Below, in pieces: positions 6,127 through 13,852 of a DNA stretch of 64,000 nucleotides. Position 1 is the first letter of the stretch. Every line of letters begins with the position of its first letter. The notes under the pieces were generated by a model, which was not told where the DNA came from, made no database searches, and saw only the letters and a program-made list of their open reading frames with translations. The position numbers and the translations under genes are program-made. Origin of the DNA: Dimorphilus gyrociliatus. Taxonomy: Eukaryota; Animalia; Annelida. The stretch lies in assembly GCA_904063045.1 (NCBI GenBank), contig CAJFCJ010000002.1:4087891-4151890 (forward strand). Direction: 5' to 3'.

Positions 6127-6134
6127 TATATAAA
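6127..6134 (+). promoter_or_regulatory. Candidate TATA box of the SGDD polyprotein gene
   Basis: TATATAAA about 90 bp upstream of ATG 6218, flanked by C/G-containing sequence. TATA-like strings are common in AT-rich DNA. Confidence 0.4.
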
Positions 6135-6217: not shown

Positions 6218-7303
6218 ATGAATTTCAAACTGTTAGGAGCTATTGCTGTTTTATCTGTCTTCATGATCAATCAGGTTAATTTTTCAATTTTATATTCAAT
6301 ATTTTTAATAATATTGCTAATAGTTACTATATTTATTTACAAATAAGTCTTTTCATATTATATTAAACATTCAATTTTTCTTGGTGTCTTGTTTTAGATT
6401 GTCAAAGTTGAATCGGCAGCAATCTTAGATAAAATTGAGGAAAGACAGTTGACAGAACTTGAAAAAAGACACATCAGCGGCGATGGTAGCGTAGACGATA
6501 GCGGAGACGATAGTGGTGATGATAGTGGTGATGACAGTGGTGATGATGAAGAAAAGAGAGACATCAGTGGAGATGATAGCGGAGACGATAGCGGAGACGA
6601 CAGTGGTGATGATAGTGGTGATGACAGTGGTGATGATGAAGAAAAGAGAGACATCAGTGGAGATGATAGCGGAGACGATAGCGGAGACGACAGTGGTGAT
6701 GATAGTGGTGATGACAGTGGTGATGATGAAGAAAAGAGACACATCAGTGGAGATGATAGCGGAGACGATAGTGGTGATGATAGTGGTGATGACAGTGGTG
6801 ATGATGAAGAAAAGAGAGACATCAGTGGAGATGATAGCGGAGACGATAGCGGAGACGACAGTGGTGATGATAGTGGTGATGACAGTGGTGATGATGAAGA
6901 AAAGAGACACATCAGTGGAGATGATAGCGGAGATGATAGTGGTGATGATAGTGGTGATGATAGTGGTGATGATGAAGAAAAGAGAGACATCAGTGGAGAT
7001 GATAGCGGAGACGATAGCGGAGACGATAGCGGTGATGATAGTGGTGATGATGAAGAAAAGAGAGACATCAGTGGAGATGATAGCGGAGACGATAGCGGAG
7101 ACGATAGCGGTGATGATAGTGGTGATGACAGTGGTGATGATGAAGAAAAGAGACACATCAGTGGAGATGATAGCGGAGATGATAGTGGTGATGATAGTGG
7201 TGATGATAGTGGTGATGATGAAGAAAAGAGAGACATCAGTGGAGATGATAGCGGAGACGATAGTGGTGATGATAGCGGTGATGATGAAGAAAAGAGACGT
7301 TAG
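6218..7303 (+). CDS. Secreted acidic polyprotein precursor (320 aa): signal peptide, short pro-piece, then ten [H/D]I(SGDD)4-6EEKR units; exons 6218-6274 and 6398-7303
   Basis: Exon 1 encodes MNFKLLGAIAVLSVFMINQ. A phase-0 GT-AG intron (6275-6397) joins IVKVESAAILDKIEERQLTELEKR in frame with the 6449 ORF. Every unit ends in dibasic KR. Confidence 0.85.
6470..7297 (+). repeat. Nested coding tandem repeat: 12-bp SGDD units within 66-90-bp peptide units
   Basis: Unit lengths are 30,30,30,26,30,26,26,30,26,22 aa. Units 2, 3 and 5 are identical over 90 bp; units 6 and 9 are identical over 78 bp. Confidence 0.95.
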
Positions 7304-7952
7304 GAAGAGAAATATATGATTATCAAAACTTAAACATAATACACTTGGAAAATTAATACTGGAAAAATGGTCTGAAAATTGGAATTAAACTGAGATAATT
7401 GGAAAATTTAGATCATAAAATGGATAAATTTTGGGTCTAATTGTTAAATTTACTTTTTTCAAATATACATACTTTTTATCGATTTAGAAAAAAGTAAATG
7501 AAATAAATATCTCAGCATTATGGTAAATACTTGCAAAAATTAGTATTACAAATAAAAGGTTTGTTTGACATTTAGTTAAATATAAAAGTGTAAACTAATA
7601 AAGCTGTCGTCGGTCTTTTACATGATGATGAAAAAACAGTTCCGTTTATTATAATTGAAGTAGAAAACAAATGAAAATTGTACACATTGTATACTAGAAC
7701 AGTATTAAACACGGAACATATTAGATTACTATCAGTCATAATTGAGCTGACTAATTAGAAAGAGATTGTTTTTGTGGAAAGCGGCTGTTCAGGCTGAAAA
7801 ATACATATGCGTAGTGTATTTCTTTTTTGTTTATTCAAAACACTGATGTTGAATGCCAAAAATGATTACATTTCAATATCAATAAATCATGCTAGCTTAA
7901 TTTATTTTAAAAATTATTTTTTCCCGTCATTCTTTAAATTGTTCGATACTCT

Positions 7953-8294
7953 TTAACTCATCGGAAGAGTTTCATCGGACCACTCGAGAATATCCGCAGT
8001 TGAGAATGGCGCTGTTGTATCGCTGTCAACCCTGTCCCTTCTAAAATCATGCAAATGTAGATCATCTAATTTTAACTGTCTCATTTTGGAGACTAATTTT
8101 AATTGACCAACAGTAACAATTAAAAGTAAATTAAATAAAATAATAAAAATAATAGCCGAAGATAGAACGCTAGTTATTAAAATCATTTCAATATTTAACG
8201 TAGTTTTTTTTGTTTTTGGCCTATACGTGTCATAAGTAATAGTTGTAAAATTAGTAGAATTATTTATAGTAATCCAATTAGTATAATTTCTCAT
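7953..8294 (-). CDS. Small orphan single-pass (type III-like) membrane glycoprotein, 113 aa
   Basis: Four N-glycosylation sequons in the first 17 residues (NYT, NNS, NST, NFT), a ~25-residue hydrophobic helix and an acidic tail. No recognised family. Confidence 0.5.
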   Translation of the reverse strand: MRNYTNWITINNSTNFTTITYDTYRPKTKKTTLNIEMILITSVLSSAIIFIILFNLLLIVTVGQLKLVSKMRQLKLDDLHLHDFRRDRVDSDTTAPFSTADILEWSDETLPMS

Positions 8295-8880: not shown

Positions 8881-10300
8881 TTAACATTTTGATAAATCTC
8901 TCTTTGATAGACATTTGCATTTTCCTATCATGGTATCAACCATTCCTAATAGCCACTTTTGGGCTTGTTTGACTGGAACAACTTTAGCTATCCTCTTTTC
9001 AGATTCGTAATGCCATGCATACAATTCATTTCTATGTCTGTTTCTATTTAAAGCAGTTGAACTAAAAGTACTCCACGGTAAAGTGACTAAAACGTCACAC
9101 TCGGATAGAATTTCCCAATCTAATATTACTTTTTCAGTTGCATCGCAGATATCATTTTTTTCTCCATAAAAAAGATCTAAATGAACAATTGCTCCTTCAA
9201 TATCAAGTATTCGGTCTTTAAATAACTTTTTAGCTTCATCTCTTAAATACTGTGAGTCTGTTGCTACAAATATTTTTGAATTACTATAAATAACATTGGA
9301 GTTTATTTTCTTTTCAAAAAATTCCCAAACTGCTGAAGCTGCCCATAAATTCTCATAATCGAAATCGTTAACTAGTGATTTAGAATCACCGGTTCGGAGA
9401 TGCGCACAAATTAACTTATTACCATTTAACTTCCTAAAAAATTCGTCTTTTTTCCTCTGCATCGAAGGTTGCGGTTTAAATAGAAGGTCGTATATATTAT
9501 ACTGCAAAAAATATAGTTATCTTTGTTATATTAACATAATATTGTAAAGTATTGGAGTTTTATACCTTTAACGGAAGTTGTAAATAATTGAAATTAGTTA
9601 GATCGTCGTCACGAAATCCATGACTTAATAGTAATTGCCTGAATTGTTGCTGAACGCTAAAATATTTCAAATAGCCAAATTGACCAGTTTTAAATGAGAC
9701 TATTTGAATAGAATCGTCAAAGAGATTCGTTAATAATTCATTAAATCGAAAAGGTTCAATATTATCCGGATAAGAGTCCAAGAAATTATGATCTCGTCTC
9801 TCTCCATTTGGTATATCAGTATCCCAGTGTATAAGATTCGATTTTAAATAGCTTGTTAAATTGCATGGTTTGGCAATGTTAACTAATAATTGCCTTTCAC
9901 TAATCAAAGCTAGAAAGTATGCTACTAATATTCCTTGTAATCTATTTCCCCAACCCCCGCATAAATCAGCTTTTAAACATTCGTATAGTACATATTTTGT
10001 AGAATTATGAACAATAGGCCAATATCTTTTAAATAGAATATTCTTCAAAGCATTATCTTCGATATTTTCATTCCACAAGTCGTCTTTGCTTAAATTTCTC
10101 CTATAAGACGGCCAATTGTAGGCAAGTTCACTTCTCCAAACTTTAATTTCTTTACTATCCTCTTTTATTGTAACTTTGGGCTGAGATATGGCCTCGTTGG
10201 ACAAAATAAATATTGATTTATGAAGTAATAAAACTAAACCAAATATACTGAAGATAATGAGAAGCCGAAAAAATTTCACAAATTTTCTGCCACAAAACAT
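8881..10300 (-). CDS. Type II membrane fucosyltransferase-like enzyme (FUT8/NodZ/GT37/POFUT superfamily), ~451 aa; exons 10300-9566 and 9501-8881
   Basis: N-terminal TM anchor, CGGWGNRL, motif I CAHLRTGD, motif II IFVATDS, motif III DWEILSECDVLVTLPWSTFS. A phase-0 intron joins LPLK-YNIY. Confidence 0.85.
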
Positions 10301-11135
10301 ACCTAGGTAAATTTGATATTCTTTACCTTTTGGATATAATACTTGAGTGCTGTATACCAGTTCAACACTATCAATATAAATCAATCATATTCTATGGCGA
10401 GAAGTAGTTAAATAACCAATCGATTAGTACGTTTACGTCATTATTAAATTTGTTAGTGATGATTATTTATTTAATATCCAACAATTCTTGTTATCGTTAG
10501 AGTAGATACCAAAAGTTTTGAAATATACCGTTTAGGCTATTAGATTACCAACCAGTTTAAAGGTATTAGAATTTATTATTATACTAGTATATCTCTGTAC
10601 TTACCTATTGTCTGCAATTGTATAAATGGGGAATTATATGGTCATCTACAATAAATATTGAAACTGTAAAGTTATAAAAGTCTGACTACGCCACCTATTG
10701 ACGATTTTTATATAAATATTTGCTATATACAAACGTAGAAAATTGTATGTGCAATTATGATAAAGGAACGAAAGAAGTATTTCGTATATATTATTTTCAA
10801 ACTTCTCTTTTTATTATAAAGGAGAAGTTTCCGTGCATAAAGTATCTTGTTTTCAGCACCAGAACAAACAAAACAAACAAAAAAGCGATATTATTATGCA
10901 AAAAAAAGAAAAAATCAAAACATAAAAATGCTTTGACTGCTCTCTAGAACAATTTTTAGAATCTATAACCCTTTTTATAGAATGTTAAAGTGCCAATTAA
11001 TTCTTTTATTCAATATTAACGGGGATATAAAGTTTGAAAATAGTTTCTCTGATATAAAAGCATTTAGTAAAGCTATATACTAACCTAATAGATTGATGTA
11101 CATATGATCAAGATTGTTACTTATAAATTGTTCAT

Positions 11136-12360
11136 CTATCTAATAAATCTTTTGGAAAATGGTCCAAAAACGGTTTTAATATAGTTTTGTGTTCGGATGC
11201 ACTCAATTCTCGATCGAATATTACTTCCCCAAATTATAATTCCGTTAAAGAATAAACTATTAGCTTGAGAAATCGAAGCGTTAAGTGAAATCTATTGAAT
11301 AAAAACAACGTCTGAATAAAAGCATAGAATTAAATATTTAAATGTTCGATTTGATCTTATTTAATTTTTTAATTCTATTAAAGCTATTTAAATATTTACC
11401 ACTTTGTAGAAGGATGTTGTACTACTGTAATAATACTTTGAATATAGGTATAAAGGCTTTTGCAGTTGCCCTGTTAATTTTCGAACCCTTATTGATTCTG
11501 TCATTCTATTTCTAACAAATTTCCATTGACTAGTTGGGGATAAATTCTCTTTTAAATACGCTGATGGGAATAGCGCGGTTGACAGTCTAAATAGCCATTT
11601 CAATTTATCATTATCATCTTTAGTTGTTTTACTACATTTATAATCTCCTTTATTATGATAACAATCGGGGAAGAGGTAAAAACCCCATTTAGCCATTGGT
11701 CTAAGTTTCTTACCAAGGTTGATTGTTGCTTCCATAAATTGTCTGGCGGATTTTTCAAATTCTTTTCTACTTTCTTCAATTATTTTATCCATTGGCCAAG
11801 TTGGATAACGTCTTTTCACCAATTCTATGCTACGATCTTGATAAATTTTCTTAGAATCCCAATTTCGTTTAAATAAAGGCCTCCAATCTTCCCAGTCAAT
11901 AACAGCCAATCCAGAAAATCCTTTATCAAGGAATTTCTCTATATCTCTTTCTGCTTTTTCAAGGTGTTTCGAGAGATTGGCCATCTAATATTTGTTTAGA
12001 AACGTTTTATTCTAAAGAGTAGGTTAATTAGTATCTCAACAACATTTCGCTTACCTGTGGTAGACCTCCATTTCTTGCTTTTCCATTTTGGTCAAAATAT
12101 GGATAATAACCTAAATCAGGCCTATAAAATAGACAAATGCGATCACCTTTCAAACCATCAAACTTATTAACCGTAATCCTAAAGCTTTCTAATGTTGATT
12201 TAAGATCGAGACCATATTTATTGTAACAGTCTTGTACAGGCGTATTCCATATAACCGAAAAACTATTGGCCTTTTCATAATGAATCTGATGGGTAAAACC
12301 AATACAGACGAACCACAAAAAGCGGAAATATTTCCTTAAGAAACCTATTAGGTTATACAT
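11136..12360 (-). CDS. HYAL: GH56 hyaluronidase/chondroitinase, ~348 aa; exons 12360-12055, 11984-11400 and 11291-11136
   Basis: WNTP, NGGLPQ, catalytic VIDWEDWRP, WGFYLFPDCY, FPSAY and GIIIWG. The third exon is not in the ORF track but joins in phase 0. Confidence 0.93.
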
Positions 12361-12587
12361 ATTTCTAATTATTGTGTATTAATAATATGGGCGGTCACAT
12401 CTGCATAAATTGATAAAAATAGCTACAAGTTAAGTAATTGAATATCTTATCTAGTCGAAACGTTATATATACAGTATATATATGCATAGACTATAAAAAC
12501 TAACATAATATTAGCCTTAACATCATTACACACATTCGAAATTTTACACTTTTGTTATTATTATGATCTCTATTTTCATTAATAATA

Positions 12588-13852
12588 ATGAGCGTCACTA
12601 ACTTTTTATATAAATCAATTATTTCTGCTATCTTTATCTTCCATCAATACGGCGTTATTCATCTGACTGATATCAATTTTAAACTAGAAAATAACACCAC
12701 AAATAATCTAAGAGATAATCCATTATATAAAGGAAATGATAATATTATTCTTTTTGATTTGGTCTCATTTTGGACAAGAGAAACAGCCAGAAAGTCAGGT
12801 AAATATCTAAATAGGGTAAAGCAAAAATGGAAAAAGTTTAGCTCACGTAGAAAAAATCTGGATAATTCCAATAACGAAATCGAAATTTCCAATCCTTCAC
12901 GTCGCTTATCAAACGAAATTGAGGTTGCTGAAAGAGATTTTAATTTTCGATTGGATACCGACGACACTGAAAGATATAAAACCGATATTAAAACAGCTTT
13001 ACTCTTGTCTTTTTACCATAAAAATGTTGTTCGTGGAGCTTTGAGAACAATATTAACGGTATTTACTGGATTTATGAACATTCCAGGAATATATTTTGCT
13101 AGGAAAGCGAAAAAAAGATGGAAGTCTTATCATAATAGAATACGAGCTGGTTTCGCTTTTTTCGGATTTACCTCCTCAGTCGTGGCAATTCTAGGTGGTC
13201 TCTACGAAAGTGGTCTAAGTGAAATTGCAAATTACGTTCCAATGATTGAAGATGAAACTTTGGAAGATTTTAGAGAAATGGAAGAAGAAGATGAACTGTT
13301 AAAAGATATTGAACAGAGTGAAATTCTAGTAGAAAAAGAGAAAGTATTGGAAATAAAACTGTCTAATGAATTTGAAGAAGACCCTAAAGATATTTCTTTC
13401 TTATACGTGGAAGATAGTAGGGTTCCTAATTCAACGTTAGAACATCCGTCATCATATAATTTCGTATCAACTTTCACTTCTCAGAATAGAAGAACTGAGT
13501 TTCTCCGAAACAGTTTGTTTTTCAACAACATTATGCAAAAAAACGCATACAACTTACTTTTTAATAAGGTGCTACTACTAAAGTTCCCAAACTGAGTACA
13601 TTTAGATCTGACTTAAAAGCGGCCTACTTCCTCCCCATACCTACCAAATTGATAAAGAAAAGTCGTACGATTTATTTAACTACAGTAGTATATTTGGGAT
13701 GTTTTATGATATTTATCGTAACCTTCGCAATAGCCTATCTTTCGCACAAGAGGAATAGAAAAGATTCAATAAACACGTTTTTAGAAATAATTACACCTTT
13801 CCAAGAAACCAGTAAAAGTTCAGAAAACTTTGATTTAAAACAAGAAGCCTAA
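12588..13852 (+). CDS. Orphan multi-segment membrane protein, ~402 aa; exons 12588-13512 and 13569-13852
   Basis: A 56-bp phase-1 intron (gtttgt...aag) joins the 335-aa ORF to the frame of the 13649 ORF. Two central hydrophobic segments, an acidic region and a C-terminal TM helix. Head-to-head with HYAL. Confidence 0.55.

Follow-up and report, generated by a model that had tools for sequence, protein, structure and literature searches.

The window analysed here, a stretch of 64,000 nucleotides of the tiny marine annelid Dimorphilus gyrociliatus (contig CAJFCJ010000002.1 of NCBI assembly GCA_904063045.1), contains a two-exon gene at positions 6218-7303 of the + strand, a region that we read directly, and its product joins a signal-like N-terminus and a short pro-piece to ten tandem units of an acidic repeat. 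The features of the gene and the candidate control elements on its two sides are listed below in window coordinates.

6127..6134, + strand: TATA-box-like match TATATAAA, 91 bases 5' of the ATG, a candidate core promoter
6218..6274, + strand: exon 1, the ATG at 6218 plus 18 codons, start of the annotated gene
6275..6397, + strand: intron of 123 bases, GT..AG
6398-7303, + strand: exon 2, a single open frame of 301 codons, then the stop at 7301-7303
6398..6469, + strand: start of exon 2, with the end of the signal region and the 24-residue pro-piece ending ELEKR
6470..6559, + strand: unit 1, 30 aa, H-type, two substitutions
6560..6739, + strand: units 2 and 3, 30 aa each, D-type, identical in DNA
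6740..6817, + strand: unit 4, 26 aa, H-type
6818..6907, + strand: unit 5, 30 aa, D-type
6908..6985, + strand: unit 6, 26 aa, H-type
6986..7063, + strand: unit 7, 26 aa, D-type
7064..7153, + strand: unit 8, 30 aa, D-type
7154..7231, + strand: unit 9, 26 aa, H-type
7232..7303, + strand: unit 10, 22 aa, D-type, then a further Arg and the stop at 7301-7303
7502..7602, + strand: three AATAAA motifs (7502, 7551, 7597), candidate polyadenylation signals

The 19 codons of exon 1 translate to MNFKLLGAIAVLSVFMINQ. The intron that follows has the donor CAG/GTTAAT, non-consensus at +3 and +5 and unlike the donors of two neighbouring introns (GTAAGC and GTAATG), and an acceptor made of a T-rich tract and TAG (6395-6397), reading TTGTTTTAG/AT across the junction. 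Exon 2 has no Met, and the acceptor TAG doubles as an in-frame stop that closes the frame 5' of the exon, so that the repeats need an upstream exon to be translated. Among 17 possible phase-0 first exons upstream, only 6218-6274 combines a CAG/GT junction with a signal-like peptide. The TATA-box-like match is the sole one within 218 bases upstream of the ATG, and the AATAAA motifs lie 200-300 bases past the stop codon in an AT-rich flank. The public annotation places a + strand gene at locus 11548-12633, which corresponds to window 6218-7303, its product having 320 residues and matching no Pfam family. Since 19 and 301 codons give 320 residues, and a 1086-base range minus a 963-base coding sequence leaves a 123-base intron, the proposed model is the public one, and the coordinates, the intron at 6275-6397 and the counts of the preliminary description all hold. 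The acidic repeat gene is thus already annotated, but unnamed.

Upstream lies a complete Rho-family gene with a CAAX box at its end, an exon of which matches DgyrCDS1845 at 100% identity. Downstream, tail to tail with the repeat gene, are a 113-aa ORF, a pair of weakly FUT8/O-FucT-like ORFs and a GH56 hyaluronidase, followed by a further ORF on the + strand:

7953-8294, - strand: ATG-started ORF of 113 aa, showing motifs that resemble N-glycosylation sites and a single membrane-like hydrophobic segment, unannotated and convergent with the acidic gene
8881-12523, - strand: annotated gene of 713 aa, whose upstream exons (12028-12360 and 11388-11984) are GH56 hyaluronidase
9560-10384 and 8881-9507, - strand: ORFs with a type-II-anchor-like hydrophobic stretch of their own and a weak FUT8/O-fucosyltransferase likeness (E about 0.004, below the cut-off)
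11388-12360, - strand: GH56 hyaluronidase, 4-5 kb from the acidic Ser-Gly gene
12588-13595, + strand: ORF of 335 aa that opens with ATG and lacks a Pfam family, its product not on record and the annotation placing no gene there

The 713-aa model covers both GH56 exons and the FUT8/O-FucT-like pair, and may be two genes merged into one. The ORF at 12588-13595 may have arisen by chance or belong to a gene that the annotation lacks, and the 113-aa ORF at 7953-8294 has no Pfam match. Exact look-ups for two ORFs in the neighbourhood returned no record. Males of D. gyrociliatus reportedly use enzymes to dissolve the epidermis of the female before they inject sperm, and the GH56 hyaluronidase is a candidate for the penial-gland enzyme involved.

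Repeat array and N-terminus

Exon 1 begins with a signal-peptide-like N-terminus, with K at residue 4 and a 13-residue uncharged hydrophobic core. This call was made with a heuristic rule (K4 and a hydrophobic core) applied to exon 1 alone, and the same fixed rule marks only 5 of the 628 other ATG-ORFs of the window as signal-like. Both the signal peptide, by this heuristic, and the short pro-piece ending in KR that had been claimed for the locus are therefore present in the spliced gene. The closing KR of the pro-piece is kept with a synonymous change of the Lys codon while the neighbouring residues have diverged, which is one small sign that the KR matters.

The ten units, of 22-30 residues each, follow the pattern [H/D]IS..(SGDD)n..EEKR, starting with HI or DI and ending with EEKR. 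All ten end in KR, and with the pro-piece this makes 11 KR sites in exon 2. There are 53 Ser-Gly dipeptides, each between Asp residues, and in the exon-2 pieces counted about 44% of the residues are Asp or Glu (131 of 287). Once the KR pairs are removed, the predicted peptides have 20-28 residues and a net charge of about -11 to -15, with no Cys, no C-terminal Gly and no aromatic residue. The earlier counts of units, Ser-Gly dipeptides, peptide lengths and charge (up to about -15) were thus reproduced, and the earlier unit formula, [H/D]I(SGDD)4-6EEKR, describes the array except for unit 1, in which GDGSVDD replaces two regular tetrads.

Tandem Repeats Finder reports a period of 90, 9.7 copies and a score of 1174, with a higher-order period of 168 bases, far more repetition than chance would give. 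Between units of the same size there are 0-6 base differences, so the array is either young or undergoing homogenisation. That the KR sites agree from unit to unit stems from recent duplication, and not from independent conservation.

Reading frame, transcription and relatives

Throughout the 48 SGDD tetrads compared (6932-6972 left out), variation is confined to third codon positions and is always synonymous. An antisense (Ser-Ser-Pro-Leu)n frame is likewise open over 280 aa and equally free of amino-acid changes. As this frame shares the third positions of the sense frame, synonymous-only variation is insufficient as proof of the latter. Other features do separate the two strands. Three two-fold sites of the sense frame show only C/T, though they are four-fold in the antisense frame, and the four-fold Gly site of the sense frame shows A/T/C. 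The signal exon, the in-phase splice sites, the single TATA match and the annotated model likewise exist only for the + frame. Taken together, these sequence features clearly favour the + frame over the antisense one.

A run search found 0.25 of the sampled words of the stretch in one RNA-labelled run and 0.05 in two metatranscriptomes. Several runs of unlabelled kind (X2-X5) hold 0.50-0.65 of the sampled words, shares that would fit transcript-only coverage. A separate lead, DgyrG1846 (log2FC 3.3, late versus early embryo), was considered as an expression record of the repeat gene and dropped because its numbering is uncertain: the P numbers of the paper exceed 16,000, isoform pairs included, against 14,203 genes, and if the CDS tags follow the P numbering, as we assumed, G and CDS numbers need not coincide.

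Sequence searches and statistics on exon 2 used positions 6398-6931 and 6974-7300 (6932-6972, inside unit 6, was left out). The resulting protein pieces matched no Pfam family at E up to 1. A word-index search with the 6398-6931 piece, in which low-complexity words dominated and which was limited to lengths of 98-311 aa, too short for the 320-aa product, returned only an HMG-box protein with an acidic tail. The same type of search with the unique N-terminal 46 aa found nothing, hence there is no short spliced fragment on record. Against 1.84 billion representatives, phmmer gave 30 matches. All of them are look-alikes of low complexity and period 4, with repeats of GDxS, PSGE or GDDN or, in the case of a link-domain lectican (P0028), a match to its GAG-attachment region, and none has periodic dibasic sites. 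The ESM Atlas gave no usable match. Low complexity and length limits hampered these homology searches. The gene's own 320-aa annotated product, 178 residues of which the query covered, is absent from the phmmer matches, possibly through a bias filter or clustering. Neighbouring annotated proteins of the same assembly do occur in the collections where the 320-aa product failed to surface.

No orthologue of the repeat gene was found in any searched collection, and the neuropeptide list published for D. gyrociliatus does not include it. Homology to granins or serglycin was likewise not found (no Pfam family at E up to 1, no granin match by phmmer), nor was homology to Aspein-type proteins (Pfam, and phmmer over the representatives). 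AlphaFold2, run on the single sequence, gave a pLDDT of 50 and a pTM of 0.13 with only one 4-residue helix, a result that fits disorder in a model of an orphan that would score low without an alignment anyway.

Possible cutting, glycanation and function

The KR sites of the array can be compared with those of the published proneuropeptides of the same species, in which seven EEKR/ELEKR sites precede genuine peptides: DDEEKR in FLamide, DEEEKR in MIP, SEEKR in leucokinin, AEEKR and LEEKR in RGWamide, GEEKR in tachykinin and PELEKR in myomodulin-2. Because the KR contexts of the repeat gene match these, its sites look like ones that the convertases of this worm use, and cutting is plausible. The prohormone-style processing put forward in the preliminary description is therefore borne out as to architecture and species-matched KR context, and the cutting itself stays plausible from sequence. 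A KR pair with Glu at P4 is not a furin site, and it would thus have to be a PC1/PC2-type enzyme, acting in the regulated pathway, that does the cutting.

On this basis our best explanation, which we hold tentatively and at somewhat less than even odds, is that the locus carries a real, lineage-restricted gene for a secreted, disordered, granin- or serglycin-like polyanion precursor, which would be cut into about ten acidic peptides acting by charge. The precursor would enter the secretory pathway and be packed into dense granules, where a PC1/PC2-type convertase would cut after each KR and a carboxypeptidase would trim the basic residues, leaving about ten peptides of 20-28 residues with a charge of -11 to -15. 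Some of their Ser-Gly sites might carry xylose-linked sugar chains or phosphate. The peptides would then act through charge and not via a peptide receptor, possibly as a granin- or serglycin-like cation-binding granule matrix or counter-ion and, after release, possibly as a soluble polyanion in secretions that form mucus, adhesive or cocoon. The design of the protein itself suggests a charge-based secretory product. The non-consensus splice donor, the recent duplication behind the uniform KR sites, the lack of an orthologue in the collections searched and the absence of the gene from the authors' neuropeptide list count against this explanation. In addition, a KR with Glu at P4 may stay uncut if the protein is made in exocrine gland cells without PC1/PC2, and dense glycosylation could block cutting at KR.

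The main rival, which we consider possible but rather doubtful, is that the protein stays wholly or almost uncut, as a proteoglycan- or mucin-like core made by an exocrine gland, and forms part of mucus, egg cocoon or adhesive. Chains of chondroitin or heparan type would then sit on many of the 53 Asp-Ser-Gly-Asp sites, with the KR pairs as passengers of the duplicated unit. The published rule for xylosylation asks for Ser followed by Gly with acidic residues within about eight positions, and acidic residues lying C-terminal to Ser-Gly favour heparan initiation. All 53 Ser-Gly sites have the flanking acidic residues that this rule for glycosaminoglycan attachment requires, and the earlier identification of Ser-Gly flanked by acidic residues as the xylosyltransferase motif stands at the sequence level. 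With its signal-like peptide, Ser-Gly sites, flanking acidic residues and what may be an unstructured context, the protein has the sequence marks of a proteoglycan core. Invertebrate cores are moreover small, lineage-specific and without cross-phylum homologues, which fits the empty homology searches, and one of the phmmer look-alikes is the GAG region of the link-domain lectican (P0028). The hyaluronidase/chondroitinase-type GH56 gene and the fucosyltransferase-like ORF 1.6-5 kb downstream also point this way. A glycan-degrading enzyme beside a candidate GAG core is suggestive; however, the category was picked after seeing the neighbourhood, and gene neighbourhood is weak evidence in animals. 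An uncut core fails to explain why basic residues occur solely as KR pairs, one closing each unit and one closing the pro-piece, in exactly the context that is used for cutting in this species.

It seems improbable that the gene encodes a classical multi-copy precursor of a neuropeptide, hormone or pheromone, with acidic peptides acting on a specific receptor. The layout of signal, pro-piece and KR-flanked copies is that of the species' own pedal peptide and FLamide precursors, and the start of the unit after KR (H-I-S) loosely recalls, by eye, the HIGA-like precursor, in which KR is followed by H-I-G-A. Yet the low-complexity units differ in length, with 4-6 tetrads, a variation that would hardly suit the ligand of a receptor, and they lack Cys, aromatic residues and a Gly for amidation, in line with the earlier remark that the trimmed units, free of Cys and C-terminal Gly, are unlike typical neuropeptides. 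The want of an orthologue in the searched collections and the gene's absence from the curated list argue in the same direction. As a separate observation, made by eye, the junction E-K-R/H-I-S-G at window 6455-6480 resembles E-K-R/H-I-G-A and D-K-R/H-I-G-A of the HIGA-like precursor. This likeness hints at a possible origin of the cassette and is too short to mean much.

We see equally little chance that the array is a young repeat in rapid expansion, its function slight or absent, or that the relevant product is the antisense (Ser-Ser-Pro-Leu)n protein. The near-identity of the units, the lack of relatives and the open antisense frame, equally free of amino-acid changes, would agree with such a reading. 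Against it stand the + frame evidence set out above, from the signal exon, splice phase, TATA match and annotation to the C/T-only two-fold sites and the A/T/C Gly site, and the RNA-labelled run that holds a quarter of the words of the stretch.

The remaining candidate, a mineralisation-type calcium-binding protein or phosphoprotein (Aspein- or phosphophoryn-like), is very improbable: the Asp runs punctuated by Ser-Gly resemble Aspein in composition, and Asp or Glu make up roughly 44% of the exon-2 residues counted, but Pfam and phmmer yielded no homology, S-G-D differs from the S-x-E/pS site of the secretory kinase Fam20C, and to our knowledge D. gyrociliatus has no shell or other mineralised part. 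The genome paper adds that chaetae have been lost in this species. In a worm without mineralised structures, the role as mineralisation modulator entertained in the preliminary description is unlikely.

Within the preferred reading of a precursor cut into charge-acting peptides, a more specific and decidedly speculative proposal, to which we assign a low probability, is that one precursor supplies about ten polyanions of 20-28 residues as a genetically encoded charge reagent. This reagent would serve either as an adhesion-releasing factor or, on the functional level, as the invertebrate equivalent of granins and serglycin that organises dense-core granules. In the model of temporary (duo-gland-type) adhesion, a small negatively charged releasing factor competes with adhesive proteins rich in Lys, Arg and His. 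Such a releasing factor has long been predicted and never identified. D. gyrociliatus has epidermal, adhesive and penial glands and produces a gelatinous cocoon.

If the cassettes are cut, the gene would be a rarity, since the acidic "spacer" of a prohormone-type precursor would itself be the product, and it would provide short, defined polyanions that are gene-encoded. It would also make testable what invertebrates use instead of granins and serglycin to condense granule cargo, as well as the identity of the negatively charged releasing substance of temporary adhesion. D. gyrociliatus, a small, sequenced and culturable annelid, is suited to these questions of granule cargo and adhesion release. 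Should the protein prove to be an uncut proteoglycan core, the short list of invertebrate cores would gain a further lineage-specific member, and studies of xylosyltransferase and of the choice between heparan and chondroitin would gain a natural test substrate of very high density.

Comparison with known systems

Close in layout are the species' own FLamide, MIP, RGWamide, pedal peptide and myomodulin precursors, which share with the repeat protein the signal, the pro-piece, the KR- or KKR-flanked copies and the EEKR/ELEKR context. In these proneuropeptides, however, the acidic stretch is a spacer before a conserved, mostly amidated peptide, whereas the repeat protein consists of the "spacer" only, in units that vary in length and are without orthologues. 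Shell matrix proteins of Aspein or Asprich type are also secreted, rich in Asp and punctuated by Ser-Gly, but they have no KR sites, no homology to the repeat protein was found, and the worm is not known to have a mineralised skeleton.

Serglycin is a small secreted core with a run of Ser-Gly sites that forms a polyanionic granule matrix, and it resembles the repeat protein in being a small core whose business part is its Ser-Gly sites. Unlike the repeat protein, it has one uninterrupted (Ser-Gly)n block, with no Asp-Asp spacers and no periodic KR, and Pfam gave no homology between the two. The Caenorhabditis elegans chondroitin proteoglycan cores CPG-1 to CPG-9 are secreted proteins recognised solely by a signal peptide and Ser-Gly near acidic residues (the SGEX motif). 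Some of them weigh only 7 kDa, and none has a homologue in a phylum other than the nematodes. The repeat protein, probably lineage-specific too, shows the same sequence marks; the CPG cores, however, have no tandem cassettes and no periodic dibasic sites, and attachment to them was shown by mass spectrometry, whereas the repeat protein is known from sequence alone.

Among annelids, the glue protein Pc-3 of the sandcastle worm is a Ser-rich granule polyanion that is stored with divalent cations and coacervates with polycations rich in Lys, His and Gly. Like the repeat protein, it is an annelid secretory polyanion rich in Ser, with granule storage having been seen for Pc-3. The charge of Pc-3 comes from phosphoserine blocks separated by Tyr and that of the repeat protein from built-in Asp, there is no sequence relation, and the tube cement to which Pc-3 belongs is not made by D. 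gyrociliatus.

Granins and other prohormones are acidic, cut at dibasic sites and part-time chondroitin or heparan sulfate proteoglycans. Chromogranin A and B and the secretogranins are, like the repeat protein, very acidic and punctuated by dibasic sites. They are known to be secreted and largely disordered, are cut by convertases into many peptides and bind cations in dense granules, and several bear chondroitin or heparan sulfate on Ser-Gly. The repeat protein differs from them in having no sequence relation, no granin motif and no disulfide loop, and its ten near-identical cassettes with 53 candidate sites contrast with the one or few GAG sites of granins, which have no tandem array. The earlier claim of recognising no family in which convertase processing is joined to this type of cargo has to be softened in that granins and prohormones are themselves acidic, dibasic-punctuated, part-time proteoglycans. 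Since granins and prohormones are both cut and GAG-bearing, the cutting and glycanation readings of the repeat protein would, by this analogy, not be mutually exclusive, and we would regard the granins as its functional analogue and not as its relative.
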